Translations under genes and position numbers: made by a program
In this document: in pieces, positions 6,008 through 24,281 of the stretch
Layout of the letters: each line of letters starts with the position of its first letter
Numbering within the stretch: position 1 is the first letter of the stretch
The notes under the pieces: model-generated
Database searches by the model: none
What the model was told of the DNA's origin: nothing
Seen by the model: only the letters and a program-made list of their open reading frames with translations
DNA from: Zygnema circumcarinatum SAG 698-1b
Lineage: Eukaryota; Plantae; Zygnematophyceae
Reading direction: 5' to 3'
DNA: 64,000 bases
Assembly (NCBI GenBank): GCA_037447605.1
Contig: CM074823.1
Span: 1,178,001-1,242,000 of the forward strand

Positions 6008-9000
6008 TGAAAAGCGCCGCGAGTGCGCGGTTCGATTACGCGCCAGCGCCATACGAGAGCAAGTTGCGCGCCAAAACGGCAGCCGGAATGTCGGCGGCGA
6101 CCAAGACGCTTACGTGGACCACTACGGAGCGGGTCCGCCGCTCGAGCTGCATTCGAATGGCCTACGCTAAGAATGCCGAAAATGGGCGTAAACCAAGAAC
6201 ATCGGTATGAATGGAACAACGCGAACTAGGTCGGTGCCGCCGTAGGTTTACGAGGCCGCTAGCTGGTCACTGTTCCTGAGTGCGCCCACTCAGCCGTGCA
6301 AGGGCCGGCCGTGACGTGACAATTATGTCACGTCACATCGCCATGGTGTTCAAGAGGGAGCAAGCTTGGCTCTCTTATTACTAACTCAAACTCGCTCAAC
6401 TCTCTCTGAATGTAGTGCTGCACTGTCGTTGGTTTTTTAGGAATAGCAATCAGAGGCTGAGGCGTAGAGGAGTCCAGCCTTGTGTATGAAGGTCGTGAAG
6501 GAACTAGCTCTCATCCTGCTAAGCTTTAGTGAAAGAGTTAGATGATGTGTCTCATGTACGAACGCTACAGCTTCACCGGCGCTAATACGCCGCTATTCAC
6601 TCGAGATCTCCGTGACGGGTTTGTCCGCACGCATCGTCAGTTCGTCGAGATCGGACTGCCGAGACCTATTATACTAGGACTCGCTACAGACGGACGCCAA
6701 GGCCGCTTTTCACAGCGCCGCAGCGTTGCGCCTGGCCGCACGCATGTGCGCTGCCAGACGCGCGCTGCCGATATGACGACGCCAACTCGCTGACGGCTCC
6801 GGCCGAAGGCCGACAGTACGCGGTATCCGGCCACGGGTTACCAGCCACGCCGCTGCTCCTCGCAGCCCCGCCTCGTCCTCGATGTTGGTAGAGGGTTCGA
6901 CGGGGAAGCGATGGGCGGGGCTTAATGTAACGCGATTCAACCCTAAACCGGCCGCCTTTCCACCTCTACCGCGACACTCGCCCACCAGTCCCCCGACCTC
7001 GCTATATCGTATCGCAGCCATTTTTCTGATCTACGGCCGCCACCGCCTCCCACCATGGTCACCACGCGCGCACGGGGAGCTGGGGAGCCGGCACCGTCAG
7101 ACACACCGCCGGTTCCCCTTCCTCCCCCACCTCCCCCACCGGCACCCGCTTACCTTGCCGTGGGCGAGGCCTCAGGGGAGCATGTTCCACCGGTCGGGGC
7201 TCCGGTCACCGCGACCTCGGCCGCGCGGGCCCTGTCGGCAGAACCAAACCTTTGGGAGGACCACCCGGAGGACCCTCCTCAGCACGGTGATCTCGGTCAG
7301 CCTCGCTGACACTTATGGATTCACCCCCGCGATCGAGAGCTGAACGTCGTCTCGCCGTCGTCAGCTTCTCAAGATGAGCGTGCCGAATCGCCTGAACTAC
7401 ATCACCTGGAGCTCCTCTTATGACGGTCCGACGGAGAACCGACGCCTTCAGAGGACTTCCGAGACGACTCACCGCCGACTACGGAGGTCCCAAGCGGGAC
7501 ATCGTGGAGACTAGAGGTCACCTCCTAACCCGTGAGTGAGCTCGGTCCTCCGCCGGGGTCCACTCGGGTGCTACCTTCAGGAACTCCGCGTCGGGTGGGT
7601 ACCCTCCTCCCCGCCTTTCCGGCCTGCCCCGTGTATCGTCGAAGTAATTCCACCTGCCCTACAAAAGTGTGGGCTCGCGATATCCGATGGGGTTATCTCA
7701 GGGGGGATATTCCCACCGGGATACACCGCGGGGACGGGCCTCGCGGGCCTTGATCCCGCAGCGATGGCGCCTACCCTTGATCAGTTTATGCTATCACGCT
7801 TGCTGTCCCACCCATTCCTATTGTGGGTGAGCGACCAGCTAACATCAGCCTGCTTGGAGCAAAAGGGGTCACTTTAGCCGTAGGGTTACCTTTACGCACT
7901 GCCCAACGGAGATGCGAACTACGCTGCACTCTCTCCTCGCGGACAGGCTTCTCGCCGTTCTAACCTTCGGCCAGTATCAACTAGCTTGCCTCGCTTTGAA
8001 ACCGAGATGAACAAGCACTTTGGCGGCTAGACCCCGCCTTGGAGGGTCGCTTCTGGCACGCCACTGGTGCGTACAGCAACAGGCTCCAGTTCCTCACACT
8101 GCCGAGACACGGTAAGTTCACGACACTGCGACACTCCTCCCGGTGTTGAACGCTCTACAGTCGGCGGGGTTGAAAAACCTCACATTGCTAACCAACCGCT
8201 GCTCAACCCCGCTACTTCTGGGCTCTGGGTGGCCGCGGACGCAGATTCAAGCGAGGCGGCCGCCAGAACGCGACGCTGCTGACCGTGAGCGCCGACCCGT
8301 GGCGTGGACTTGGTCCTCGCACTTCTGGTCTAACCGCTTCTGCTGAGACCCCACCTTCGAGCCCCAAGGCTGGCAGCTCCAAGCGCCTTTGGGAAAACTA
8401 ACTCAGCCCTTGGCGCGAAGTCCTCAAGTTGACGCCCCAAGAAGCGACAGGTTTAAGAGAAGGAGGGCCGAGCACTGCTACGCATAAAGGGGCATCTGCT
8501 CGTGATCGGCCCTAAGGGTCAAGAAGCCCCCGCCCGAAGTGGACCTCCACCTCGCCTTCCAGAGGTTAAGCCGCAGTGGTGGGTAGGGGGAGAATGGTTG
8601 TTGAGCCGCTAAAGCGTAGGGATTTTGTTGAACCCTTTTCCAGTGATTTATTGAATATTATGGGCCGACAGCCCCTTGCATCAGATATTTTCGTCTTGCA
8701 TTGCCCGGAATATCTGAATGACTATTTGTTCTCCACCACGACCTCTCGCGAGTTTTCGCTGGCGCGAATGGATGGTTTCGCTGACCTGATTCTCGAATCT
8801 CACCGGAGCTACCGACTGCTTGATAGTGTTCCCCGATGCCTTCCTATTCGGGTATTTCTTCCATGTTTCCTCGTGGTTCCGCTGTGCACGCCTTGCCCAA
8901 CACGCCCCCATCACTTGCTTCCTCGCCACGCCCATTGGAAGGTGGTACGGATTTGGCTGAGGGGTCACCCGGCCGGTGCGCCGGGACGACTCGTGCCACA

Positions 9001-9829
9001 TCACCTCTTGCACGCCTGCCTTCGCCCTTACGCACGGCGCCCCGCCAAGGCTGGTCAGACTCTCGCATCCATGTTTCAAATGATCCCACCGCGCTGGGCG
9101 ACCTTTTCGGGTTGTGGATAGACTCACATCGCCTTTATTCGATTCCAGCCGACGATAATTTTTCGAACTCTTCGCTTGTTAAGATGGCCGGCCTGGTTCT
9201 TGCGGCATCGCCTCCGACATACCACGCTCGCGATGGTCGTAGCGTGACACATCCTCGGTTATGCGGACTACCGACATAATCTAATCGCTTTCTCCGGGCA
9301 GACCAATGCTTGGTCACAATTACCCGGCATTGACTTGATTTTAGGCAGTCATTGGCTGCAGTCCGTCCGGGCCATGATGGATTTTGCAGTTCCAAACTGC
9401 GTGGTTCGCAGTGGCGCTCGGCCGGTCACCTTACTACCGGGTATGCCCACGGTTGTTCCCCCCCTCCATCCAGATGCGGCGCACTTGTGCTCCGCCATGC
9501 AGGTGGCGAAAGCCGTGAAAACGGGTTGTGTACTTTTCTATGTGCACCTCGCCGATGAAATCGAACTGCTTATGACGGTGACCAGAGTGGTTACCCACCG
9601 CCAGAGTCGTTACCACCGCATTCACCGGGCGATCCAATCTTACTTAATCCACTTCAGACATTTTCCCAGAGGACCTCCCCTCACTCTGGCCGCCTCTCAA
9701 GGGCGGGGCAGCCTATTCCCTTGAGCTCGAAAGTGTAAAACCACTCTTGGGCAATTACCCATCGCATTGAGCCCCAAGAGACCAAGAAATGCGTAGCCAC
9801 CGGTCAATCTGCTCCAAAGCGTTGATTGA

Positions 9830-10630
9830 GCCTGGCCGCAGCCCCTTTGGGGCCCCATCCTGTTTGTGGGAAAGAAAGACGTTCCTGCTTAATGTGCATT
9901 GACTATCGGCCCTTAATAAAATCACGACAAAGAATCGTTATGTTTACCTCGACCAGATGATTTATTAGACCGCTGCATGGGGCTGCACTTTCACTTCGGG
10001 CCGATCTGGCCCGTGGCTACCATCGCATCCGGTCACGGATGCCGACGCATCAAAGACTGGCGCCGTGACGCATATTGGTCATTTCAAAGACAAGGTACTG
10101 CCCTTTGGGTTGACAAATGCACCGGCAACCTTTCAGTCTGTGATGAACGAGATGTTCTCCGGCATGGACGATTACGTTTTGGTCTACCTCGATGACATTC
10201 TGGTTTTCAGCAAATCAGAACAGGACCACTTAACCCACGTTCGCAATGTGTTGTCAGTCTTACGCCAGCACACATTTTATGCGAAACGCAAGAAATGTCA
10301 GTTCATGCAGCGCGAGTTGCTCTACCTTGGACATATCCTTGGAGCGGACGGCCTCAAGCCTGACCCGGGCAAAATTGCGGCGGTTGCCACTTGGGCTGTT
10401 CCTAAGGACCTGCATCAGTTGCGTTCCTTCTTGGGCTTTGCGAATTATTTCCGTAAATTCATTCAAGGATTTAGTAAGCTAGTTACTCCACTTACAGATC
10501 TCACAAAATCTGGAGTTCGCTACACCTGGACAGATGAATGTCAGGTGGCGTTTGAGGGGACCAAACACGCCCTCATCACCGCACCTACGTTGGTGTTGGC
10601 AGACCCTACCAAACCCTATGAGGTGGTTTA
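9830..10630 (+). pseudogene. Gypsy reverse transcriptase, frameshifted; best preserved part is ORF 10065-10630
   Basis: The translation contains VLPFGLTNAPATFQSVMN, VLVYLDDILVFS, KCQF, YLGH, LRSFLGFANYFRKFI and TAPTLVLADPTKPYEV. Confidence 0.95.
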
Positions 10631-11284
10631 TGGCGCTGCCCGTGACTTGGCGCCGCCCTGCCAGAGGGCTAACCCCGCTTATGAAAGTTTCAAGATGAAC
10701 CCAGCCGAATCTAAAACTATTCCAAGAATCGAAAGGTGAATCGCCGCAGAGTCGTTTCACGCTTCTTTGAGGACATGGCGCTAGCATTTGAGGGGCGAAG
10801 CCGCCACGCTGGTCACGCACTCACCGCCTTGACCTTCCTCTCCTCCCAACAAACACTATCTAGGGCGCAGTCTGCTGTCCGAAGTTCCGTGAGATTTGAC
10901 CGCCAATGGGTTTATATCGCCGTGCAGGCTGGGCCAATGTGGCCGCATCCGCTGAAGGGCATGCCCGGGCCATCTTGCCCGATGGTGCGCCACGACCCGA
11001 AAAGCCGAGGAACAGCTGTCGGTGAAGGTGGGCCGCCAACTCACCTTCTTCCTAACGGTTCAGCCAGATACCGCAACCAAATAGCCATTTGCCGACCCCC
11101 CACCCTCTCTCCTCTCGATCTTAGACAGATGTGGGATTCTTATGGGTTATGTCAGGATCCTATGTTCTTGGATCTGCCGGTAGTGGCTATAAGGACAAAG
11201 TGCCGCGCCCACGTGACCAAGTTTTGGTACCGCCGACAGCGCTAGTCGCATCTGGGCAAGGAACAAGACTGCCAGCCTCATTCT

Positions 11285-13470
11285 AAGTGAGATGCACGAT
11301 CCCTCCATAGGGCCACATGGGTGTTGCCAAGACTCCGAGAGGCAAGATTCGTGAGTTCTCGGGTGGCCGACTCACGACGATGTATCGCATATGTGCTCAG
11401 CTCGGCCCAAATCTGGCCAACGGATAAGCCCCGCGATCGGGTGTATTCCTGCCAGCTTCAACTTCACTCACTCTTCTTTCCAGAAGTGGGAGAGCATCGG
11501 TATGGATCTGATCACAGATTTACCAGAAACCCCACGGGGTCACGATGCTATTATGGTGTTTGTAGACCGTCTCAGCAAAATGGTGCACTTTGCATCTACG
11601 CTGAAGTCCCACATGAAGAGGTGGCGCTACTTACGTGCTGGCCAAGGTGAGTTTGCATGGTTTTCTGCTAGTCCACCATTGTTTCTATTGCCAGGATCCT
11701 GATGCATCGTCACTTTTTGTGTTGGATGTGATAGGTACATCAAGGTGTTGGTACTTAGTTCCGGTAGTATGATGTTGTCCGACATCGTGGTGGTATAGGG
11801 ACAATGTTTCGTATGAACTACGTTTCAAAGTGAGGACCTAATACGGGGGTGCCCGACGATAGTGGCATGGTACGGCAGGTCTGGGGGAAGGTCTAGGGTC
11901 GTAGGAATTACGCTTAGGCTTAGACCGCATTCAAAGGGGTGCACGGAATGCTTGATCGGAGCCGCCGCATTGCACGCGCTACGATCAGACGCGACGACGC
12001 GAAACAAAATGGACGCTGAGATATTTGGCGCGAGAGGCGATCTCGCGACGGTTTACATGATTGGTCGCGCCCAGCTGCAGCAGATGGGGCTGACGCAGTC
12101 TTCGGCGTGACGTGACGCGTGGGAAGTCGGTTGAAGAGATTGAGACGCTTCTACGCGAATGAGGAGGTGGTGACGCGTATCGCTGGACCCTAAGGCGCGT
12201 CTTCCCGCGACTCGACGCAGGTCAACTGAGAAGGGGAACGTAGTCAGATCTTGACCGGAGGCTGACATGTACAGCCGGGCGGCGGACGGTATCGCCGGGC
12301 GGGCGGAACAAGACGGATCTACCTTATGTAGGCTCTGCCGGGCGTAGGGTTTACGGAAGTCGCCAGAGGCCGGCTGTTGAACGCCAAGAGGCCGCCGCTG
12401 AACGCTTGCTGGCCGCTGAATGCATGCCAGCAGGCGTACCGCGGACGCGGACATCGGGTGTCACAACACCGTCAGCCAGTTTAAGATTGGAGCAAGCTTG
12501 GCTCTCTCACTCACTCACTCTCTCTCTCAACGCGTGCCGCCGACCGCTGTCAGAAGGAAGAGTAGTAGAGGCCGAGGCTCTGCAGGAGTCCGCCTCAGGT
12601 ATGAAGGTCGTGAAGGAACTAGCTCTCACGCGCGTTTTAGTGAAGAAGCTAGATGGTGTGTCCCTGTGTGCTGAGGTAGCAGGAGGAGTTCATGGAGGCA
12701 GTAGTGCTTGGCTACCTAGCTGGGGTGTAGGCTATCATGAGAGGATAGGATGTTTATGAGAGGAGGAGAATCTAGCATAAGGGATCTATGTAGATTTCTC
12801 AAGAGCTTGTATTACACCTCATGAAGCTTAAGGAGTTTTAGGGCCGTGGGCTTTCTCCTTACTTTCATCAGACACTGGGTCATGTGAGTCCTCGTGGTTG
12901 GATTGACGTAGGATGAGTGGAGGCCACCATCAGATGGGCGTGTGTAAGCTGCCCACACCCAGGAGATCATTGAGGAGCCGTGGAGTTGAGGACGAGACCA
13001 TATGGGAGATGAAGAAGTGCACTTGTTGAGGCGTGGGTGTTTAGTTTCGGCCAGGCGCACTGCAAGAGAGGTGGACGAGAAGGCATATCGTGGCGGAAGC
13101 GGTATGTGGCCCAAGGTGAAGAAAAAGAAAAGTTTTGAGCTCTGATACCCAGGGCATGTGTTGCCCTTTCCTTGTGTCTTTCCTTTCTTGCTGCCCCTTG
13201 CACCAACATTTTGGACTGAAATTCTGAAAATCGTGGGCACCAAGCAAGCGCTCAGCACAGCTTTCCATCCGCAAACTGACGGCCAGACGGAGAGGGTCAA
13301 CCGCATTGTGGAGGATTTCCTGCGGCATTACGTGGGACCCACGCCGGATGAGTGGGATACCTTGCTCCCATTGGCGGAGTACGCCATCAACAATGCTCAT
13401 CAGGAATCAATCGGTACGACCCCCTTCTTTCTGAATTATGGTCAGCATCCTCTAAATCCCCTGCAGCCAA
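11285..13470 (+). pseudogene. Gypsy integrase split by a solo-LTR insertion (11285-11719 and 13209-13470)
   Basis: WESIGMDLITDLP...VFVDRLSKMVHF lies before the LTR. FWTEILKIVG...STAFHPQTDGQTERVNR...AEYAINNA...TPFFLNYG resumes immediately after it. Confidence 0.9.
11720..13208. mobile_element. Solo LTR (1489 bp)
   Basis: TGTTGG...CCAACA inverted termini with a perfect 5-bp TSD, TTTTG, at 11715-11719 and 13209-13213. The integrase continues on either side. Confidence 0.9.
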
Positions 13471-13536
13471 GGGATCAGCCGCCGTCCTCGTGGAATGAAG
13501 GCATCCACCGGGACGATGACCCTTGGNNNNNNNNNN

Positions 13537-13914
13537 CAAAAAGCTTGTATTACACTCTTGAAGATAAGGAGTTTTATAGCCGTGGGCTTTCTCCTTACTA
13601 CTGCATCATTTGTCATGTGAGTCCTCGTGTTGGATTGGCGTGGTGGATGAGTGGAGGCGACCATTGTATGGGCGGTGAGTTGCTCCACACAAGGAGATCA
13701 TTGGAGGAGCCGAGACCATGGAGGAGTTAAAGTGTTCTTGTAGGTGGCGCTTTTAGTTTTCCGCTGTGCGCACATGGCAAGGGGTGGATGGAAGGTCAGA
13801 TCGTGGAGGAAGCGGTATGTGGCCCAAGTGGAAGATGAAGAAAGCTTTTGAGCTTCATCCGGGCATGGATTTATCCCTTCCTTGAAGTCTGCCCTCTGGC
13901 CCCTTGCACCAACA
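13537..13914. mobile_element. Right-hand fragment of a related LTR
   Basis: Diverged match to 12805-13208, ending in the same CCCCTTGCACCAACA. Its left part is lost in the N gap at 13527-13536. Confidence 0.8.
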
Positions 13915-14640
13915 TGATCAGGAACCACGAGGGACTGGTCGCAAATGGCCTAAGCACAAAAGAAAAAAGCTAGTGAATCGTTCTTGTCATTGATGATGCT
14001 TTAATTATTCAGGTTAAATCTGGTCAAGCATATCGTCATCAATGCCATCACCCGAGCGTTCACCGACGAGTGCACTATCATGCATGCATGAGGTTTGGAT
14101 CGTCCAACAACCCATCGAAGTCCATGGAGCTAAAAAAACAGTTCAAAGTCTTCATAGTCATGGGCGTCGTTGCCATCAGCTCCTTGTTCAAACCCTCGTC
14201 TTAAGGCACCCACTTACTAAACACTCAACACGTGTGACTTGGTCCGTAGAATTCCGTACACCATATCCGTACGACTCTACGTCCGATTGTACGGATTGCG
14301 TGTATAATACGGTACAGTGTAGCGTAACGGAGCTCTGTTCGACGGATCTGCGTCAGTTCAATCGTACTTGACATATGCCTCTTCCGTGTCACGGATCAGC
14401 GGAATCCAGGAGCTGCCAACGGAAAATGCAAAAAGGCGGCGCCAGGTGTTGGCGGCCCACGGGACGGCACACCATCCAGCTAGGCGCACTCGGAAGCGCC
14501 GCAAAATGCCGCCGATTGTCATCAGCTGACCTATCCGAAGGCTNNNNNNNNNNAGTTTCAGCACGGACGCGCGAGTGGCCGTACAGCACCTGCAACTAGC
14601 TCAGCAGTCTTCTCTTAACCCCACTTATCTTGTGCTACAA

Positions 14641-15151
14641 CAGTCTGGGGTCCTCATATTTACCGCCCTGAGGACTGCGTCCCCAAGAATTTCGCCCCGA
14701 TTTTGCCGAAACCACCTTTTTGTACGGTAACTTACTGTCCGTATTATTCGTACTGTCTGTATTATTCGTACTGGATGTACTAGGCGTACAAGCTGTAATA
14801 GCCGTTACGGGCTTACGCAAAACTCACCTAATCTCCCCGCACGTGCCGCCGTAAGAGGCGCTCGCTCTTCTCCCCTTCTTCTTGGCTTCGATACGATACG
14901 ATATGATACGGTACGATATGGTACGATACGAAACGCCCCGATACGGTACTATCCGTACTAGCCGTACGATTTGTAATTGACGATACAGTACGATACGGTA
15001 CGATATATTACGGTACGATACGTACGGTCTAACATGAACTCTAACATAATACCGCCCGTCTATTGGTAACACGAACCTTATATATAGAAAATCAATATTT
15101 TCGCCTCATATTGGCCAAAACCAGGGTGGAAAATATGAGGACCCCTGACTG
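14641..15151. mobile_element. Tc1/mariner-like MITE copy 2 (511 bp)
   Basis: 30-bp TIRs (27/30 identical), CAGTC(T/A)GGGGTCCTCATATTT(A/T)CC(G/A)CCCTG. TA follows the right end and AA precedes the left end. Confidence 0.8.
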
Positions 15152-15173
15152 TATTGAACCATCCTGAATAATA

Positions 15174-15329
15174 GGGGGTGTCAGACTTAAAAAATTTCAG
15201 TACGCGTGTTCGTAAGTTTGACATCAGAACGAGTACTCCAGTATGATAGCGATCCTCCTGCGGCGGAGTACTTTCGTAACCTTTTTTTCGTAACGCTTTT
15301 CGTAAGATTTTGTTAAGTCTGACACCCCC
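15174..15329. mobile_element. Short MITE (156 bp) with GGGGGTGTCAGACTTAA TIRs
   Basis: TIR GGGGGTGTCAGACTTAA(A/C)AAAAT, with TAATA on both flanks. Same family as 42908-43484. Confidence 0.8.
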
Positions 15330-15456
15330 TAATATGTACGGATTTGTGTATTTCAATCTCTCAGAAATAGTTACGGAACGGTCTTCCACCGTCGATTCGA
15401 AATCGGACAGCTCTCCGCATTGAACGGTCAAAACCAATCAGGATTTAGTATTTATA

Positions 15457-16016
15457 CACGTGGTGAACTCCCAATGGCGGTTGAGTAACAACATGCACAC
15501 GTGGCCGACGTTTATTGGTGCATGCTGAGTCAAATGTCCCCAGTTCCGCCAGTTCGGTCAAGCTGCCAGGAATCCCTCGAGACCGGATTTTGGCCCTACG
15601 GGAAACTTTCAGTCAATCAGAGGATGCCACGTCAGTGTAAAACACGACAAAGATCGCCGCAGATAAGGACCAGATGTGACTTTTTGTCTTCTAGTCGGGA
15701 CGGCATCAGTAACATTCCGACACGTGGTGATTGGAGACATTGCCGAAAAGCCTCAACCAATCAGAGGGCAGGCTCGCCCTGACCGAATCTAATGGTCAGC
15801 AGAGACAAAAATTCGTATGGTCGAGAACCAGTAAAAACAAAACATCACCGAATCAAAAACTGACACGTGCTCAACAAAGACAACAAACATCCAGATCCTA
15901 GATCTGACAGCCTTTGATAAGTCAGATTCTGTGCGGTGATTTTTGGACAGGTTCGAAGTCCGTACGGACTTTCAGAAGTACGATCCGTAGAAGCGCTTGC
16001 TTTCCTGCCACGTGGC
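15457..16016. promoter_or_regulatory. G-box/ABRE-like cluster upstream of expansin 1
   Basis: CACGTG at 15457, 15498, 15721, 15864 and 16009 (the last within GCCACGTGGC), CCACGTCA near 15627, and several CCAAT. Function is inferred only. Confidence 0.4.
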
Positions 16017-16431
16017 CAGCATACTGCCAAAAAGTTACCTCGTGGCACACTTTCTTTGGTACACCTCCTGCAGCGAATTACGAGACCGCCAGCAAGAATT
16101 CGTTCAAGCACACTCTTGAAACCGTACTTTGCACCAGCTTATGAATATACTGAATTTCATGATTGAGTGCTAACTCTTTGTTCTGTAGCTGAAATCGGTT
16201 CTTGCGCTTCGGCCCCCGGCTGGACGGCGCCACTTGGGTCNNNNNNNNNNAATGAAACGAAAGGCCGCCGATGAAGCAGAGCATTGCAGAGGCTTGTAAG
16301 CGTTGGACGGAGAGAGAGAGCGAGAGAGAGAGAGAGAGAAGGAGAGGAAGAGGGAGAGGGAGAGAGAGAAACTGAGAAAGAGACAGATAGAGAGAGAGAG
16401 GGAGCTCATTCTTCTACGCAGCGCGGCAGCC

Positions 16432-17274
16432 ATGGCTTCAACCAACCGCTTCTCCCTCCTCCCCGTCCTCCTCCTCCTCCCTCTCCTCTCCTCTGCGGCG
16501 ACCCCTCCTCCCTGCTCTCCTCCCGCCCGCTCTCCCCCTCCCCCTCCGCCTCCCTCCCCCCCTCCCCCCCCCCCTCCCTCTTCCTCCGCCGTTCCATGGA
16601 CCGAAATGACCGCTTCGTACTACGGCGGCCCAACGGCGGACGGCGCCAACAACGGCGCATGTGGCTACGGAAACGCGAACCAGAACGGTTACGGAGTCAC
16701 CACGGCCTCAGCTTCGGGCCAACTTTACGGAAACGGAGCCGCATGTGGCTCCTGCTACGAGGTCCAATGCGTGCCTTCCAAGTCCAAGTTCTGCCTCCCT
16801 TCAACCCCCACCATCAATATCACGGTCACGAACCTATGCCCTACGGGCTACGAGGGCCTCTGCGACTTCCCCAAGCTGCACCTCTCGCTGACCCAACCCA
16901 TGTTCTCTACCATTGGCCAAATTGTGGGGGGGGTGATCCCCATTAGGGCGAGGAGGATTGCCTGCGTTAAGAAGGGGGGGATCGCCTTCACCATAATGTG
17001 GGGCAGCTACGACTCCTTCTTGTTGGTGCTCGTGTCCAATGTCGGCGCGGGGGGGGACGTGGCGGCCGTGGATGTCAAGTTCGATAGCGGGGCGTGGGAG
17101 GCCATGTATCGGAACTACGGGTCGGTATGGTCGGTATCGGGCGGCCGATATTTGAACAAGGCGATGTCGTTCCGCGTGCGGCTCTTCAAGGCGGGGACGG
17201 AAGTGACGGCGAACAGTGTGGTGCCGAAGACGTGGACGTTCGGGGGGAAGTACGTCTCCACGGTCAACTTTTGA
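16432..17274 (+). CDS. EXP: Expansin-family protein (EXPA-like), intronless, 280 aa, with signal peptide and extensin-like Ser-Pro7 linker
   Basis: Signal-peptide-like N-terminus MASTNRFSLLPVLLLLPLLSSA. DPBB domain motifs ASYYGG, GACGYG, CGSCYEVQC and TNLCP. C-terminal domain motifs LVSNVGAGGDV, W..MYRNYGSVW and VVPKTW. ATG in GCCATGG context. Confidence 0.93.
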   Translation: MASTNRFSLLPVLLLLPLLSSAATPPPCSPPARSPPPPPPPSPPPPPPPSSSAVPWTEMTASYYGGPTADGANNGACGYGNANQNGYGVTTASASGQLYGNGAACGSCYEVQCVPSKSKFCLPSTPTINITVTNLCPTGYEGLCDFPKLHLSLTQPMFSTIGQIVGGVIPIRARRIACVKKGGIAFTIMWGSYDSFLLVLVSNVGAGGDVAAVDVKFDSGAWEAMYRNYGSVWSVSGGRYLNKAMSFRVRLFKAGTEVTANSVVPKTWTFGGKYVSTVNF

Positions 17275-17278
17275 GAGG

Positions 17279-17315
<37 letters not shown>

Positions 17316-17850
17316 AGAGGATGGGAGAGGGACACAGAGAGAGAGAGAGAGAGAGAGGATGGGAGAGGGACAGAGAAAGAGAGAGGATGGGAGAGGGACA
17401 GAGAAGGAGTGGGAGAGAGGAGGAGAGCAGAGGGAGGGAGGGACAATGAGGGAGGATGGGAGAAGGAGAGAGGGAGGGTAGGGGAAGGAGTGAAGAGGAG
17501 AACAGAGGCAGAGAGGGAGAGACGGAGGGAGGGAGGGATAGGGATTGGCTTGCTGTGAAAGGTGCACTGCTCGTGCACATAGGGGAGTGAGAGTCTTTTT
17601 TCTTTTTTTTGGTGGGAGGGAGGGAGAGCGATTGTCGGTAGGGGTAGAGGGAGAGAGAGGGGAGGAGGAGAGGAGGAGGGAATAAAGTACTCCGCGCTCT
17701 CAGAGAGCCGTCAAGGGCCTTTCAGCCCTAATTCCGTGTGACGGTTTTTTATTTCAATCATATAAACAGTTGGCAAGACCTTGTGTGTTGTGTCCTTGTT
17801 GTTGGGAATGTGTGATATTGAGAAGTCTTTGGGGTTTTTCGCTTTCACAT

Positions 17851-17934
17851 GACCTGCATTGACCTGTGTTGACCTGCATTGACCTGCATTGACCTGCGTT
17901 GACCTTCGTTGACCTTTGTTGACCTGTGTTGACT
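17851..17934 (+). repeat. 10-bp minisatellite (GACCTGYRTT)n forming 8 W-box (TTGACY) motifs
   Basis: TTGACC at 17859, 17869, 17879, 17889, 17899, 17909 and 17919; TTGACT at 17929. Confidence 0.85.
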
Positions 17935-18669
17935 TTCAAAAGCCTCCAGGAGTTAGAGTTGATGTTTTTGGGCTGTTCCTTTTTGTTCTTCCTTTCCGTG
18001 GCTCATTTCTCTGTCATCAAAGTTTCAAATTTTCAGAGCAGAGAGGGAGAAAAGGAGAGGAAGAAGAGAGGAAGGGAGAGTGGGGAGAGAGAGAGATATG
18101 GAGAGGGTGGGGGGGAGAGAGAGATGAAAGAGAGGGTGAGAGTGGGAAGGAGACAGAGGAATATGAGGGAGAGAGGGTGGAGAGGGAGAGGAAGAGAGAG
18201 AGCAAGAGAGAGAGGGGAGAGAGAGAGATGGGGAGAGGGTGGGAGGGAAGGAGGGAGAGAGGAAGCAGAGGGAGCGAGGGGAAGGAGAGAGGGAGGGAGG
18301 GAGTGTGAGAGAGAGAGAGGACGAAACGAGCGTTGGAAGAAAAGAGCTGTAACCGAGGAAGAGTGTGAGCAACGAGGGAGTGAGAGAGAGAGAGACAGGA
18401 GAGAGCGAAGATATCCTTGGTTCCTCGGATCCTTGGCAGTCACGTGGCGTTTCGTGATTGGTTTGTAAAATATTTCTAGCCACGTCAGTACCACGTCAGC
18501 AGAACGCGCCCTCATGGAACCTGGCGAAACACTGAACAGGACGGCGAACCTGTCCATGGAACATGCCCTGTGATTGGTCATCTTCTGACATGGTGATGAT
18601 CTGGCCTTCCGTGATTGGACAATAGCTTTTGCCACGTGCGCCAAATGTCGTTTGTACATAGTGCATATT

Positions 18670-19430
18670 TATATGGAATTACTATTTTCACACCTTTTTT
18701 GTCGAGATACACACCTTTTTTTTTCTTAAATTGCCCTCCATACCCTTAAAACCCTCAAGTAAAATCTGACCGGCGAAAAGTTGTGTATCTAGACAAAAAG
18801 GTGTGTATATAGCATTTTCCTATACGTAGTTTCGGTAGTTTGGTTATCTAAAACTAGGGGCCGATTTACACACCTTTTTGGCTAGATACACACCTTTTTT
18901 CGTATTGTCAAATTCTTTTTTAGAGCCTTACGAGGTTTTGGCTTATTTTTTAAAAGGTGTTTATCTAGCCAAAAAAGGTGTGTAAATTGAAAGTCCCTTC
19001 TTGAATGCCTTCCAATTTCTTGCTACATGCACATTGACAACCGCGTGGTTCGCGCACAGCTGTATTTTTGTACATAGAAAGTGTGTTTGGAATCCTGAAT
19101 TTAACAACGACAGCTGAAGCGCCTCAATGGAACTGCGTATAGAGCCGTTCAAACGAACGTTAACTGCCACATAGATCCTCCACCGGCATTGCCCAGTTGT
19201 TTGGCCACTTGCCTCTTGAATAATAATCTTGTCGTTTTCTGGTTCTCTCGCAGCCAAATCACAGGCCGTGCATGGTCCCTCTGTCAGGTGGCAGTCCAGC
19301 CGCCAGCTCAGCTAAACCTCCCACTCCTAATCGAACACGTGTGCATATCTTAGACGTATGCAATCGTAGGACGTCACGTGTATGACATGTCACCTATTTT
19401 TTTGTCGCCATGTCCGTCAATTGTCACGAC
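18670..19430. mobile_element. Hairpin-module repeat element, copy 1
   Basis: Two inverted-repeat pairs of CACACCTTTTT(G)NCTAGATACACACCTTTT modules (18675-18820 and 18862-18990), followed by a ~400-bp core shared with copy 2. Confidence 0.55.
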
Positions 19431-19819
19431 ATTAAACGCACACGTGACAGATGGTGATTCGTCAGGCTTGCAATGTACGGTATTTCGCTTTTCCTTGCGG
19501 CTATGACCGTACGACATTTGTACGGACCTTTGAGCCGGCTTGGGTTGGACACGTGGGCACGTGCCATTCGCTGGGACCGAGCCCGGCTGTAGATCGAACG
19601 GTGATCTGCCGTGGTGCGATCTGCTAGGGAATTGACGGCGTAGATTGAACGCACGTGAGAAGGACGGACACCCGCGAACGATCTCGTGGCGGAACGGATC
19701 TTCCGCACCGAGCGGTTTGTGCAATTCAGTCTGCCCGCCGGAACAAGGTGTGTATCGATTCCAAAGAGGACCTCATTTTTCGTTTTTAATCCTTATTTTT
19801 CTAGAATAGAACCTGCACG

Positions 19820-20610
19820 GTGCGAAAAAAAGGTGTGTGTGTAGACAAAAACGGTGTGAATATAGCATTTTCCATTTGGAAATACTATTCACACACACCT
19901 TTTTTTTAAAAGCCCCATACCCTACTAACCCTGCAGTAAAATCTGACCAGCGAAAAAAGGTGTGTTTCTAGACAAAAAGGTGTGAAAGTAGCATTTTCCT
20001 GATACATCCGGTAGTTTGGGTTTTCTTAAACTAGGGGTCGATTTGCACATCTTTTTTGGATAGATTCACACCTTCTTTCGTCGGTCAGATTTTACTGTAG
20101 GGTTTTGGGAGGTTTTGGGCTACTTTTTTTAAAAGTATGTATCTACCCAGAAAAGGTGCGTAAATTGTAATTCCCATTCTTCAAGGGCCCAAGGCCTTCA
20201 AAGTTCTCGCTACATACACAGCGACAACGCTGTGGTTAGAGCACAGCTGTTTTATACATAGAAAGGGTGTTTGGAACCCTGAACTCAACAGCGGCAGTTG
20301 AACTGCCCCAACGGGACTGCACATAGATCTGTTATGATGAACGGTGCTTCTCACATACAACCTCCGCCGCCATTTCCCAGTTGTAGGCCACGTGCCTCCT
20401 GATCTGATACTGTCGTTTTCTGATTCTCTCGCAGCCAATCACAGGCCGTGCATGCTCCCTGTGCCAACTGGCAGTGCAGCCACCAGCTCAGCAACACGAC
20501 CCAATCCTGATCGACCACGTGTATAACTCTTACCAATATCTAATCATCGGACGCCACGTGTATTACACGTCACCTATTTTTGTCGTCATACACAATGGAA
20601 CGCCCCTAGG
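19820..20610. mobile_element. Hairpin-module repeat element, copy 2
   Basis: Diverged direct copy of 18670-19430 with an extra module arm at 19825-19870. The core end (20425-20480) matches the reverse complement of 2670-2722. Confidence 0.55.
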
Positions 20611-20974
20611 TCCGACCTGTCGGGTATTTCGCGGCATCTTCCTTCGGGACCCGCCCTGATGCGCGCTTTCATTGGTCCATTGATGTTGACGTGGCATCAT
20701 GCGATTGGCTTATGTGGGATTGGAAGATGTTTCGACGGGCGGCAGTCAGTTCAGAATCGGTAGTTATCAGTTCGTAGGGAGAGGCCTAAATTATGACACG
20801 AGTCGTTACATTGGAGTACGAGATCTATGTTGGGTCATCATTCGTGCGTCCAGCGTGGCGAGTAAAGCCGGAAGTGCTGGTACGAGGTAGAGAGGGAGAG
20901 AGGGAGAGAGGGGGAGAGTGACGAGTGCGAGAGATATAGAGAGAGAGCGAGAGGGAGAGAGATAGAGAGAGAGG

Positions 20975-21009
<35 letters not shown>

Positions 21010-21035
21010 TGAGAGAAAACGTACGAGACTTCACC

Positions 21036-21830
21036 ATGGCTCCGACCACTGCCGCGCGGCCACCTGTTCCCCTCCCCCTCCTCCTCCTCCTCTCCCTCTC
21101 CCTCTCCCTCTCCCTCTCTCTCCCTCTCTCCGTCTCCGCCGCGACGGCTCCCTGGATCCCCATCAACGCCACGTTCTATGGCGGCGTCACCGGCAACGGA
21201 ACGTTCAACGGCGCATGTGCCTACGGCGACACGAACAGAACTGGGTACGGAATCAACACAGCGAGCGTCTCCGGCCAAGTGTGGGCCAACGGGGCGGCCT
21301 GCGGCTCCTGCTACGAGGTTCAATGCCTCTCGATAAAGTCAAAGTATTGCCTCCCAAATAACCCCCTCGTTAAAGTCACAGTGACCAACCTCTGCCCCGC
21401 CGGCGACGTGAGGTGTGCGCTCCCAAAAATTCACTTTACGCTCGCTCAGCCGACCTTCGCTCTCCTCGGTAAAGTCATCGCCGGGGTGCTCCCGGTACAA
21501 GTGAGGAAGGTGGCTTGTAATAAGAAGGTGGGAGGGATGGTGTTCTCCATATTGAAGGGGAGCAATGAGTACTATTTGGAGGTGCTTATATCGAATGTGG
21601 GAGGGGGGGGAGACATCGCTGCTGTCAATATTAAGTTTGATAATGGGAAGTGGCAGAACATGTACCGAAACTATGGGGCAGTTTGGTCGGTGACCGGGCA
21701 GAGCTACTTGAAGAAGGTGATGTCATTCCAGGTGAAGTCGCTGACGTCAGGAACCATCCTGACGGCAACCAATGTTGTGCCCAAAACGTGGATGAACGGA
21801 GGGAAGTACCAGTCCACGGTTAACTTTTAA
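21036..21830 (+). CDS. EXP: Expansin-family protein (EXPA-like), intronless, 264 aa
   Basis: Signal-peptide-like [21 protein letters not shown], then ATFYGG, GACAYG, CGSCYEVQC, TNLCP, LISNVGGGGDI, WQNMYRNYGAVW and VVPKTW...STVNF. Colinear paralog of 16432-17274. Confidence 0.93.
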   Translation: MAPTTAARPPVPLPLLLLLSLSLSLSLSLPLSVSAATAPWIPINATFYGGVTGNGTFNGACAYGDTNRTGYGINTASVSGQVWANGAACGSCYEVQCLSIKSKYCLPNNPLVKVTVTNLCPAGDVRCALPKIHFTLAQPTFALLGKVIAGVLPVQVRKVACNKKVGGMVFSILKGSNEYYLEVLISNVGGGGDIAAVNIKFDNGKWQNMYRNYGAVWSVTGQSYLKKVMSFQVKSLTSGTILTATNVVPKTWMNGGKYQSTVNF

Positions 21831-24281
21831 GAGGGAGAGAGGGAGAGAGGCGAGAGAGGGAGTGAGGGAGAGGGAGAGGGGAGGGAAGAAGGGACCAGAG
21901 GGAGAGAAGGAGAGAGGGAGAGGGAGGAGGGAGGGAAGAGGGGGACCAGAGGGAGGGAGGGAGAGAGGAGAGGGGGAGTGAGGGAGAGGGAGGGAAGAAG
22001 GGGACGAGAGGGAGAGAGGGAATGAGGGAGAGGGAGGAGGAAGGGAAGAGGGGGACGAGAGGGATAGGGGCAGGGAGGGGGAAGGGGGAGTGGGAGGGTG
22101 GAGGGACAGGGGGAGAGGTGAGAGAGGGAGAGACAGTGGGAGGGAGAGAGGGAGAGACCCACTAGTTACACTGCATGTGCTTACGTACTATGAAGTGAAT
22201 TAGAGTACTTTTGTTTTTTGGATTTATTTTGTTTTGGGAGCACAGGGGCGAGGAAGGCTTTTGTTAGAGCAGGGTTCAGGCGGGCAATTTTGTTAAACCT
22301 TTTGGCGTTCATTTATTTTTTCAATTTTAAGATGAGGCTGAGAAGTGCGCAATATTTTTGAAGGATGGTGGAGCTCAGCGTGAGCATTTTTGGTGTTTGA
22401 TTGATCCCATTGGTTTCATGAACAATGTGGTCTTCCATGTACGTGTACGCCCTACCTAAATCTGCTCCTCCCCCCTCTCTCTCACTCGTGGTTCTTACAT
22501 TTCTAAAACCCCTAAAAAAGTGCACCAGAGAAGTAAACAATCTTCACAACCGCTTGGAAGAGGCATCTCAAATGTCTGAGGAGTTTCAACATGGGCTCGT
22601 GACACGTGCCATCCTCCATTCCGTAAATTCCCTTATGCAGGCTCATGATGTTGTAGGACTGCAATGGAATGTGGAATGGTGTGGAATGTATGTACATGTT
22701 GTGATCGAAGGAGAGAAGGAAAATGGCATTGAACTCACGATGGCGAGCGAGGCCATCAAATGTCCATGGACAAAAGCAGCAGCATGGGGAACCACGAGGA
22801 ACTGGTCGCAGAGGACCTAAGCACAAAAGAAAGAGGTTAAGAGCGGAAAACTACGCCTCGGCGGAGCAAAGCATAGAAGCAGCCGCGAAGGTCACCGATG
22901 TGCGGCACATCGCGAGGAGGAGGATTGTGAGATGGTATGATTGATGTTCGTCATTGTGATGTTTAAAAGTGTGATGTATCGAGCATGGGAGTAACGCATC
23001 ACACCAACCAACCCAAGCAATCAACCTACCAACCAACCAGCCCTGACCAACCTTCAACATGCTATGAGAGAGATGGCTGCTTTATCTCCGGCGGAGATTA
23101 CCAGATCAAGACCATAAGGAGTAGCCAACCCCGCACCGCGCACACCAATCTTCAGGGTTTTATGATTCGTATGTTTTTGTCGGTGTGTTTTTTATCATTT
23201 ATCAGCCACCATTCGCAAGAATTCTATGGCTAAAAAAGTTTATTGCTAGAAAAGCGTCTGAGATCCTGTCTGGGTAATTCAAAAGAGCGAGAATTATTTG
23301 ATAGGATTTTTGAAGGTTTTGAAGTTTATCAAGTTCCTCTAGCTAAGGGCTTTAAAATAAAAAATTATTCTTTAAATGTTTGGAGTGTCCAGAGTTTTCG
23401 CCTTTTCTATATTTCTGTGTGTTTTTTGTGTCTACAGCCTACAGCCTACACCCTCAGGCAGAAAGCTCAACGCTTCGTTTCATGAATGACACATTCTCTC
23501 TCTCCCTCTACCACTCTTCCTCTCCTCGCCCTCTCGTCTTCTCTCCCTTTCGCTCCCGCCTCTCGCCCTTCGTCTCTCTCACTCTCTCTGCTCCCCCTCC
23601 CCACCTTCTCTCCCCCTCTCCCTCGCATATCACACATTCATTGGCATAGTCACGCCCCCATTTCAGCCCACCGCCCGAATGTACATCTCGGAAGTTGTCA
23701 GATACTTGGTACACCGCTGTGCTCGTCCCCGAGCTTGCAGCATCTTCAAGCAGCTTAGACCATAAACCTGAACAAAGAATCGGCTGCTTTACTCACTTGC
23801 TCTTCCTCTCTCTATCTCCCTCCCCCCGCATGTGCGCTCCCTTCCTCCTTCTGCTTGTGTGCCTCTGCTTGTCAATGTCTACGAGAAACCTTCTGAGAAA
23901 AAGGAAAAAAAAAAAAAAAACCAAATCAAAGCTCTCTCTCCCTTCTACCGTTTGCATTACTCTGCGCTGCGCTGTTATGTCAGTTCCCTCCCTCGCCCTC
24001 CCTCCTCCCTCACTCTCTCCTCCCGCTCCCGCTCCCCCTCCTCCCTCCCTCCAACTCTCCCTCCTCGCTCTCTCCCTCTCCCTCCTTCCCTCCCTCCCTC
24101 CCTCCCTTCCTCCCTCTCCCTCTCCTCCCTCCCTCTCTCCCTCTCCCCCNNNNNNNNNNCCCTCCCCCCTCCCTCTTTCCCTCTCCTCCCTCCTCCCTCC
24201 CTCCCTCCCTCTCTCTCTCTCTCCCTCCCCGCACCGTGAATGAGTCAGATTATAGTCAGAACACGAGTCCTGCCTGCCTGC

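Follow-up and report, generated by a model that had tools for sequence, protein, structure and literature searches.

The 64-kb window analyzed here (the whole stretch of 64,000 nucleotides from contig CM074823.1 of Zygnema circumcarinatum SAG 698-1b, to which all coordinates refer) harbors, at 16432-21830 (5,399 letters), two uninterrupted, intronless open reading frames (ORFs) on the + strand, which encode a tandem pair of expansins lacking the Asp of the canonical His-Phe-Asp (HFD) motif. The upstream gene, p1 (16432-17274, stop codon TGA), encodes 280 amino acids, the downstream gene, p2 (21036-21830, stop codon TAA), encodes 264 amino acids, and the two proteins share 56% identity over 231 residues. 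Both members of the pair are intact and constrained, carry neither of the two conserved Asp residues of domain 1, and preserve the expansin fold. Our favored reading, held with moderate confidence, is that p1 and p2 form an old tandem pair of secreted two-domain expansins belonging to a zygnematophyte radiation, which lost the HFD Asp, probably no longer mediate canonical acid-induced creep, and act as non-canonical wall modifiers. The HFD Asp is the one residue shown both genetically and biochemically to be necessary for expansin action (BsEXLX1 D82, AtEXPA7 D136), and Asp-less lineages that remain under selection raise the question of what else the fold can do.

Motif residues, read support and constraint

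At the HFD position, p1 reads HLS (within CDFPKLHLSL; codons 150-152, CAC CTC TCG, 16879-16887) and p2 reads HFT (within CALPKIHFTL; codons 133-135, CAC TTT ACG, 21432-21440). These residues fall in the H-F/L-D column in three MAFFT alignments, namely one with land-plant EXPAs (A1), one with 95 further full-length relatives, and a curated alignment of 31 rows (A2), comprising p1, p2, and 29 algal and plant relatives. In addition, the A2 profile places the same column on the HFD of maize EXPB1 (2hcz) and Phl p 1 (1n10), and on the HLD of a fungal expansin (7wvr). A pairwise HMMER alignment to 2hcz set HFD on the residues RCA of p2, which would locate the Asp elsewhere, but this shift was rejected because the multiple and profile-to-PDB alignments all set HFT and HLS on HFD. 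The Ser codon of p1 (TCG) and the Thr codon of p2 (ACG) each differ from the Asp codon GAY at all three positions, and therefore neither a base-call error nor RNA editing could hide an Asp. The Asp of the EXPA-type GGxDASGTM motif is also absent, with Thr occupying this position in both proteins.

For the remaining architecture, both proteins pass the curated Pfam thresholds for DPBB_1 and Expansin_C (E-values of 1.1e-14 and 8.3e-20 in p1, and 3.2e-14 and 1.8e-20 in p2), and two features of the expansin superfamily, a DPBB/GH45-like domain 1 and a domain 2 with an aromatic platform, are present. Each mature protein contains eight Cys residues, and none of the eight corresponding columns varies in A2. 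The groove His and the TN motif are present in p1 and p2, which read NGACGY and NGACAY, respectively. The four conserved Trp columns of domain 2 hold W, Y, W, and W in both proteins, with the Tyr at RNWG. The first-pass annotation of this region, which had described an expansin pair without the HFD Asp but with eight domain cysteines and the aromatic residues of the binding domain, is thus borne out by the alignments and solved structures for the Asp and by A2 for the cysteines, whereas its statement on the aromatics is right in kind, since three of the four Trp columns hold Trp and the RNWG column holds Tyr. However, its description of the proteins as otherwise EXPA-like does not stand: the alpha-insertion GGWCNPP is absent (the loop is 6-7 residues shorter than in EXPA, with L or R at the position of its Trp), the Asp of GGxDASGTM is missing, and the pair branches within a zygnematophyte group.

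Contigs of sequencing runs support the p1 motif. The region 16432-21830 is represented in six DNA runs of one organism from three studies, with a share of words of 0.87-0.94, and in fourteen further runs with a share of 0.33-0.48. Contigs of four runs were compared with the stretch, two of them DNA runs from different studies (X1 and X2) and two probably RNA (X7 and X20). Contigs of all four cover p1 at 16592-17265 with 0-1 differences each; the HLS codons are unchanged in X1, X2, X7 (contig 16844-16992), and X20, and the contigs depart from p1 only at 16776 (T>C), a synonymous change in Pro115. The word depth of p1 reaches 6,500-8,300 in X7 and 783 in X20, and that of intergenic pieces is 2-100. 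This RNA-like pattern indicates that p1 is probably transcribed, although X7 and X20 are only probably RNA and the depth of a contig reflects expression poorly. The p1 segment at 16504-16590, which encodes a proline-rich linker, was passed over as repeat in this comparison, and the 5' end of the transcript lies outside the coverage.

For p2 (20932-21830), the contig depth is zero in all four runs, including DNA runs of ~44x, but a zero-depth hole in such a comparison proves nothing about presence, and the p2 contigs were presumably filtered out. The share of words in X1 is 0.94, and therefore most p2 words, and hence the p2 DNA, are present in X1. The HFT of p2 is read from the assembly and is not contradicted by reads. 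Whether reads would reveal an HFD after all, as the first-pass annotation had asked, is answered for p1, which stays HLS in four runs. An assembly or sequencing artefact as the source of the missing Asp is hardly credible: the lack of a read check for p2 is the one point that would allow it, and nothing speaks for it in p1, whose HLS recurs in the contigs of four runs, each from a different study, whereas both codons lie three positions from GAY and the two paralogues agree in being without the Asp.

The comparison of p1 with p2 yielded a dN/dS (ratio of nonsynonymous to synonymous substitution rates) of 0.21 (dN 0.29, dS 1.37, 226 codons), which indicates that the duplication is old and that both copies are constrained. 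The G+C content at third codon positions (GC3) is 0.79 in p1 and 0.73 in p2, in a window of ~50% GC. An AlphaFold2 model of mature p2 (aa 37-264, built on alignment A2) reached a mean predicted local distance difference test score (pLDDT) of 91.3 and a predicted template modeling score (pTM) of 0.83, and Foldseek aligned it to maize EXPB1 (2hcz), Phl p 1, and cotton GhEXLA1 (7xc8) with template modeling (TM) scores of 0.83, 0.81, and 0.81, respectively, and to microbial expansins with scores of 0.71-0.76. We regard it as very unlikely that either gene, or the pair as a whole, is decaying and without function. The loss of two conserved acids and the lack of read or RNA support for p2 would fit decay, but the ORFs are intact, the eight Cys are kept, dN/dS is low and GC3 high, the p2 model is of high confidence, and the word depth of p1 is very high in the probable RNA runs.

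Origin of the Asp loss and putative role

A word search returned no relative above 44% identity, and an exhaustive search of 1.84 billion representatives yielded 919 relatives, none of them more than 46% identical; an exact match to the p2 protein was likewise missing from the assembly collection, and the libraries seem to contain no proteins of this genome. Across 97 full-length rows (95 relatives together with p1 and p2), the HFD column holds Asp in 78 and lacks it in 19, and the corresponding tree requires a minimum of five changes of this trait, indicating that loss of the Asp has been recurrent in the superfamily. As expected, relatives of the Asp-less seed-plant EXPA clades VIII and IX, from grasses and other plants and reading HFV, HFL, HFE, or HFQ, were also retrieved. 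In the 97-row tree, which like the other tree does not include further expansins of this genome, p1 and p2 are united (support 99) inside a ten-row group with a Shimodaira-Hasegawa-like approximate likelihood ratio test (SH-aLRT) value of 89, all ten rows of which are Asp-less. Besides the pair, this group contains two Micrasterias denticulata expansins (P0047, CCD17875.1; P0067, CCD17876.1), three proteins of Closterium species (P0078, P0079, and P0132), and three unnamed Logan and ENA proteins (P0040, P0046, and P0066), of which P0040, from a 1.2-kb contig of SRR8128902, is the sister of p1 and p2. The HFD-bearing neighbors of the pair are proteins of Netrium digitus and Spirogloea muscicola.

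A second tree, of 48 rows, was built after the HFD and GGxDASGTM columns had been taken out. Here, p1 and p2 (support of 99-100 across trees) fall within a zygnematophyte group of 15 rows (90/95), P0040 joins them as {P0040,(p1,p2)} (81/83), seven desmid-type rows form one clade (95/89), and land-plant EXPAs, including that of Marchantia, form a separate group (96/94). The phylogeny proposed as a check in the first-pass annotation therefore places the pair outside land-plant EXPA and outside EXLA/EXLB, within a zygnematophyte group, but leaves its exact relation to the desmid proteins as a polytomy.

The loss of the Asp in p1 and p2 could have been a separate event in the Zygnema lineage, independent of the loss in desmids, and we hold this as a serious though tentative possibility. 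Without the trait columns, {P0040,(p1,p2)} and the desmid clade share a polytomy with Netrium- and Spirogloea-like proteins that carry HFD; the pair keeps the His and reads GAC, whereas the desmid proteins read GGSC; and the at least five trait changes on the 97-row tree point in the same direction. However, the full-alignment tree unites the ten Asp-less rows, an approximately unbiased (AU) test does not reject a single clade of all ten (difference in log-likelihood, delta lnL, 1.98; p 0.417), and the replacement of the RNWG Trp by Tyr, together with a one-residue insertion after domain 1, is common to the pair and some desmid-type rows. The RNWG change and the loss of GGxDASGTM can be seen as derived traits that the pair has in common with the desmid proteins. 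One shared loss with the desmid proteins is thus compatible with the sequence data. The refuting outcome named in the first-pass annotation, a place in an already described clade with this motif, applies in part: the grouping with desmids is moderately supported and not rejected, but the pair keeps the His that the desmid proteins have lost.

With respect to function, the tandem duplication is old, and both copies belong to a zygnematophyte-specific expansin radiation and have lost the HFD Asp (to Ser or Thr) together with the GGxD Asp, like the expansins of the desmids Micrasterias and Closterium. The disulfide scaffold, groove His, TN motif, and aromatic platform of domain 2 are kept. Both N-termini are hydrophobic and signal-peptide-like as read by eye from the translations, and p1 and p2 are predicted to be secreted to the wall, where they may bind cellulose or another wall glycan via domain 2 and the domain-1 groove. 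As they have no carboxylate like that of BsEXLX1 D82 or AtEXPA7 D136, they would probably not mediate canonical acid-induced creep, and their role may lie in binding, shielding, or action on another polymer of the wall, in line with proposals for MdEXP2, EXLA, EXLB, EXPA13, and EXPA20. A non-canonical role appears likeliest for p1 and p2, and the suggestion to this effect in the first-pass annotation was a fair one, since these are members of the expansin family that are under constraint and lack the HFD Asp.

Several points weigh against this interpretation. The downstream gene lacks contig depth in the four runs, as described above, and the link between the pair and the desmid clade collapses once the trait columns are removed, so that the loss may be independent. 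In addition, overexpression of MdEXP2 altered cell shape although this protein has no HFD (PMC3191482), and an absence of loosening is therefore not established for the group. Finally, p1 and p2 keep the groove His and carry a pair-specific acid that might stand in for the Asp. In column 145 of A2, which lies nine residues ahead of the His, the residue is Glu in p1 (Glu141, 16852-16854) and Asp in p2 (Asp124, 21405-21407), whereas each of the 29 other rows shows G, S, T, or N. The substitute acid considered earlier, the Asp of CDFP in p1, is replaced by Ala in p2 and is thus not conserved.

Loosening activity could accordingly have been kept by means of a relocated carboxylate, with p1 Glu141 or p2 Asp124 reaching the groove and replacing the HFD Asp. 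We consider this unlikely. The column is acidic only in p1 and p2 and has stayed so across a duplication with a dS of 1.37, the groove His is present in the pair and missing from the desmid proteins, and MdEXP2 shows that walls can be altered by an Asp-less relative. However, a conservation that rests on two sequences is weak evidence, and EXPA13 regained no function through its V140D back-mutation, which suggests broad divergence of Asp-less lineages. A more specific and distinctly improbable version of this idea is that the pair represents an intermediate, in which the Asp gave way to a hydroxyl residue while a new carboxylate (E141 in p1, D124 in p2) arose in the adjoining loop, such that an abundantly expressed expansin loosens the wall via a rebuilt center. 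If this were true, the catalytic-like site of expansins would be evolutionarily movable, and the pair would offer a natural test of the role of the Asp. As a further zygnematophyte case, the pair is also useful material, with a retained groove His, a Ser or Thr in place of the Asp, and one copy that is apparently strongly transcribed.

Gene architecture and surrounding DNA

The p1 protein begins with a predicted signal peptide (MASTNRFSLLPVLLLLPLLSSAA, 16432-16503), judged from the hydrophobic N-terminus of the translation, followed by a Pro-rich, extensin-like linker of the Ser-Pro7 type (aa 25-53, 16504-16590), which appears as a gap in alignment A1. This linker, situated between the signal peptide and domain 1, is found in p1 only and not in p2. 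Domain 1 of p1 (DPBB, GH45-like, PF03330) spans aa 92-172 (16705-16947), and domain 2 (Expansin_C/CBM63, PF01357) spans aa 184-265 (16981-17226). In p2, the predicted signal peptide region, likewise judged from the translation, occupies 21036-21143, and the two Pfam domains follow at aa 76-156 (DPBB, 21261-21503) and aa 170-249 (Expansin_C, 21543-21782); all of these features lie on the + strand. A tblastn search found no third copy of the pair in the 64-kb window. The Logan protein P0001 was considered as a paralogue from the same genome and set aside, since its contig is free of GA runs and has a GC content of 40%.

Microsatellite DNA of the GA/CT type surrounds both genes. The window contains 140 purine or pyrimidine runs of at least 25 nt, which total 8.6 kb of the 64 kb, as well as gaps of 10 and 100 N, and long imperfect (GA)n and GGGAGA tracts bracket the two genes on both sides at 16250-16431, 17275-17700, 17950-18400, 20880-21035, and 21830-22170. 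Part of the p2 signal peptide region, the stretch SLSLSLSL, is itself encoded by CT microsatellite. Between the genes, a high-copy repeat at 19492-19851 shows a word depth of ~8,500-19,000 in X1 and X2 versus ~44 in its flanks, suggesting a few hundred genomic copies, and carries variants at 19559/19560. The intergenic spacer also contains a duplicated unit of ~1.18 kb (18738-19401 versus 19915-20581, 74-80% identity), as well as inverted repeats resembling miniature inverted-repeat transposable elements (MITEs) at 18675-18996, 19825-19870, and 19927-20104, with arms of 45-52 nt that are 84-85% complementary. An Rfam scan of 15000-23500 gave no match. Elsewhere in the window, an ORF at 10065-10739 represents a retrotransposon fragment, with a reverse-transcriptase domain (RVT_1, 3.8e-23) followed by the beginning of RT_RNaseH_2, and the C-terminal part of an ORF on the - strand at 39667-40590 matches the Importin-beta N-terminal domain (7.6e-06) and is probably an importin or exportin exon.

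Comparison with known expansin groups

The closest parallel to the pair is found in desmids. MdEXP1-4 of Micrasterias denticulata are expansin-resembling proteins with eight Cys in which only the Leu of HFDL is kept (Vannerum et al. 2011, PMC3191482). These proteins also lack the GH45 key residues, contain a GGSCGY motif, and have Tyr or Phe at some of the Trp positions; an MdEXP2-GFP fusion was found in the wall, and overexpression of MdEXP2 changed lobe growth and cell shape (PMC3191482). Like the pair, the MdEXP proteins CCD17875.1 and CCD17876.1 and their Closterium counterparts are two-domain zygnematophyte expansins with eight Cys that have neither the HFD Asp nor the GH45 key residues, have lost GGxDASGTM, and show Tyr or Phe in place of the RNWG Trp (Tyr in the pair). 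However, they are only 31-40% identical to p2, have lost the His, and contain GGSCGY/F instead of GGACGY. In p1 and p2, by contrast, H-F/L-x-L is present, and the other motif is GACGY and GACAY, respectively.

A second parallel comes from seed plants. AtEXPA13 (HFV, clade IX) and AtEXPA20 (HFE, clade VIII) belong to lineages that are Asp-less across angiosperms and a gymnosperm, and neither complements expa7 expa18 (bioRxiv 10.64898/2026.04.01.715922). The same study reports that the Asp is required in BsEXLX1 (D82) and in AtEXPA7 (D136), that EXPA7 D136N is inactive, that the V140D back-mutation of EXPA13 does not restore function, and that EXLA and EXLB are also without the HFD Asp (bioRxiv 10.64898/2026.04.01.715922). 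As in the pair, the HFD Asp has long been absent from EXPA clades VIII and IX, for which a role without classical loosening is proposed; unlike the pair, these clades lie within land-plant EXPA, have the full alpha-insertion, lost the Asp independently, and carry other replacement residues. The suggestion in the first-pass annotation that the pair may represent an undescribed type therefore does not hold, as loss of the HFD Asp was published for Micrasterias in 2011 (PMC3191482) and for EXPA clades VIII and IX in the 2026 preprint, and the gain from the present case is incremental.

EXLA and EXLB, which are confined to seed plants, resemble the pair in combining an expansin fold with the absence of the HFD Asp, and GhEXLA1 (PDB 7xc8) aligns to the p2 model with a TM score of 0.81. 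However, GhEXLA1 is only 22% identical, and the pair has neither the CDRC motif nor the C-terminal extension and branches elsewhere. Maize EXPB1 (2hcz) and Bacillus subtilis EXLX1 (3d30/2bh0) have the same two-domain fold (TM scores of 0.83 and 0.71-0.73, respectively), and the short loop before the HFD position brings the pair closer to EXPB than to EXPA, but EXPB1 (D107 of HFD) and EXLX1 (D82) carry the essential Asp that p1 and p2 are without.

HFD is retained in the expansins of Chara and Spirogloea. The HFD-bearing proteins of Netrium digitus and Spirogloea muscicola and the Logan protein P0001 show the highest identities to p2 (41-46%) and belong to the same algal radiation, and P0001 has the short loop in common with the pair. 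Unlike p1 and p2, these HFD-bearing zygnematophyte expansins keep HFD or HLD together with GGxD(A/G)SGTM, and the pair provides a convenient natural contrast to the HFD-bearing expansins of the same algae.

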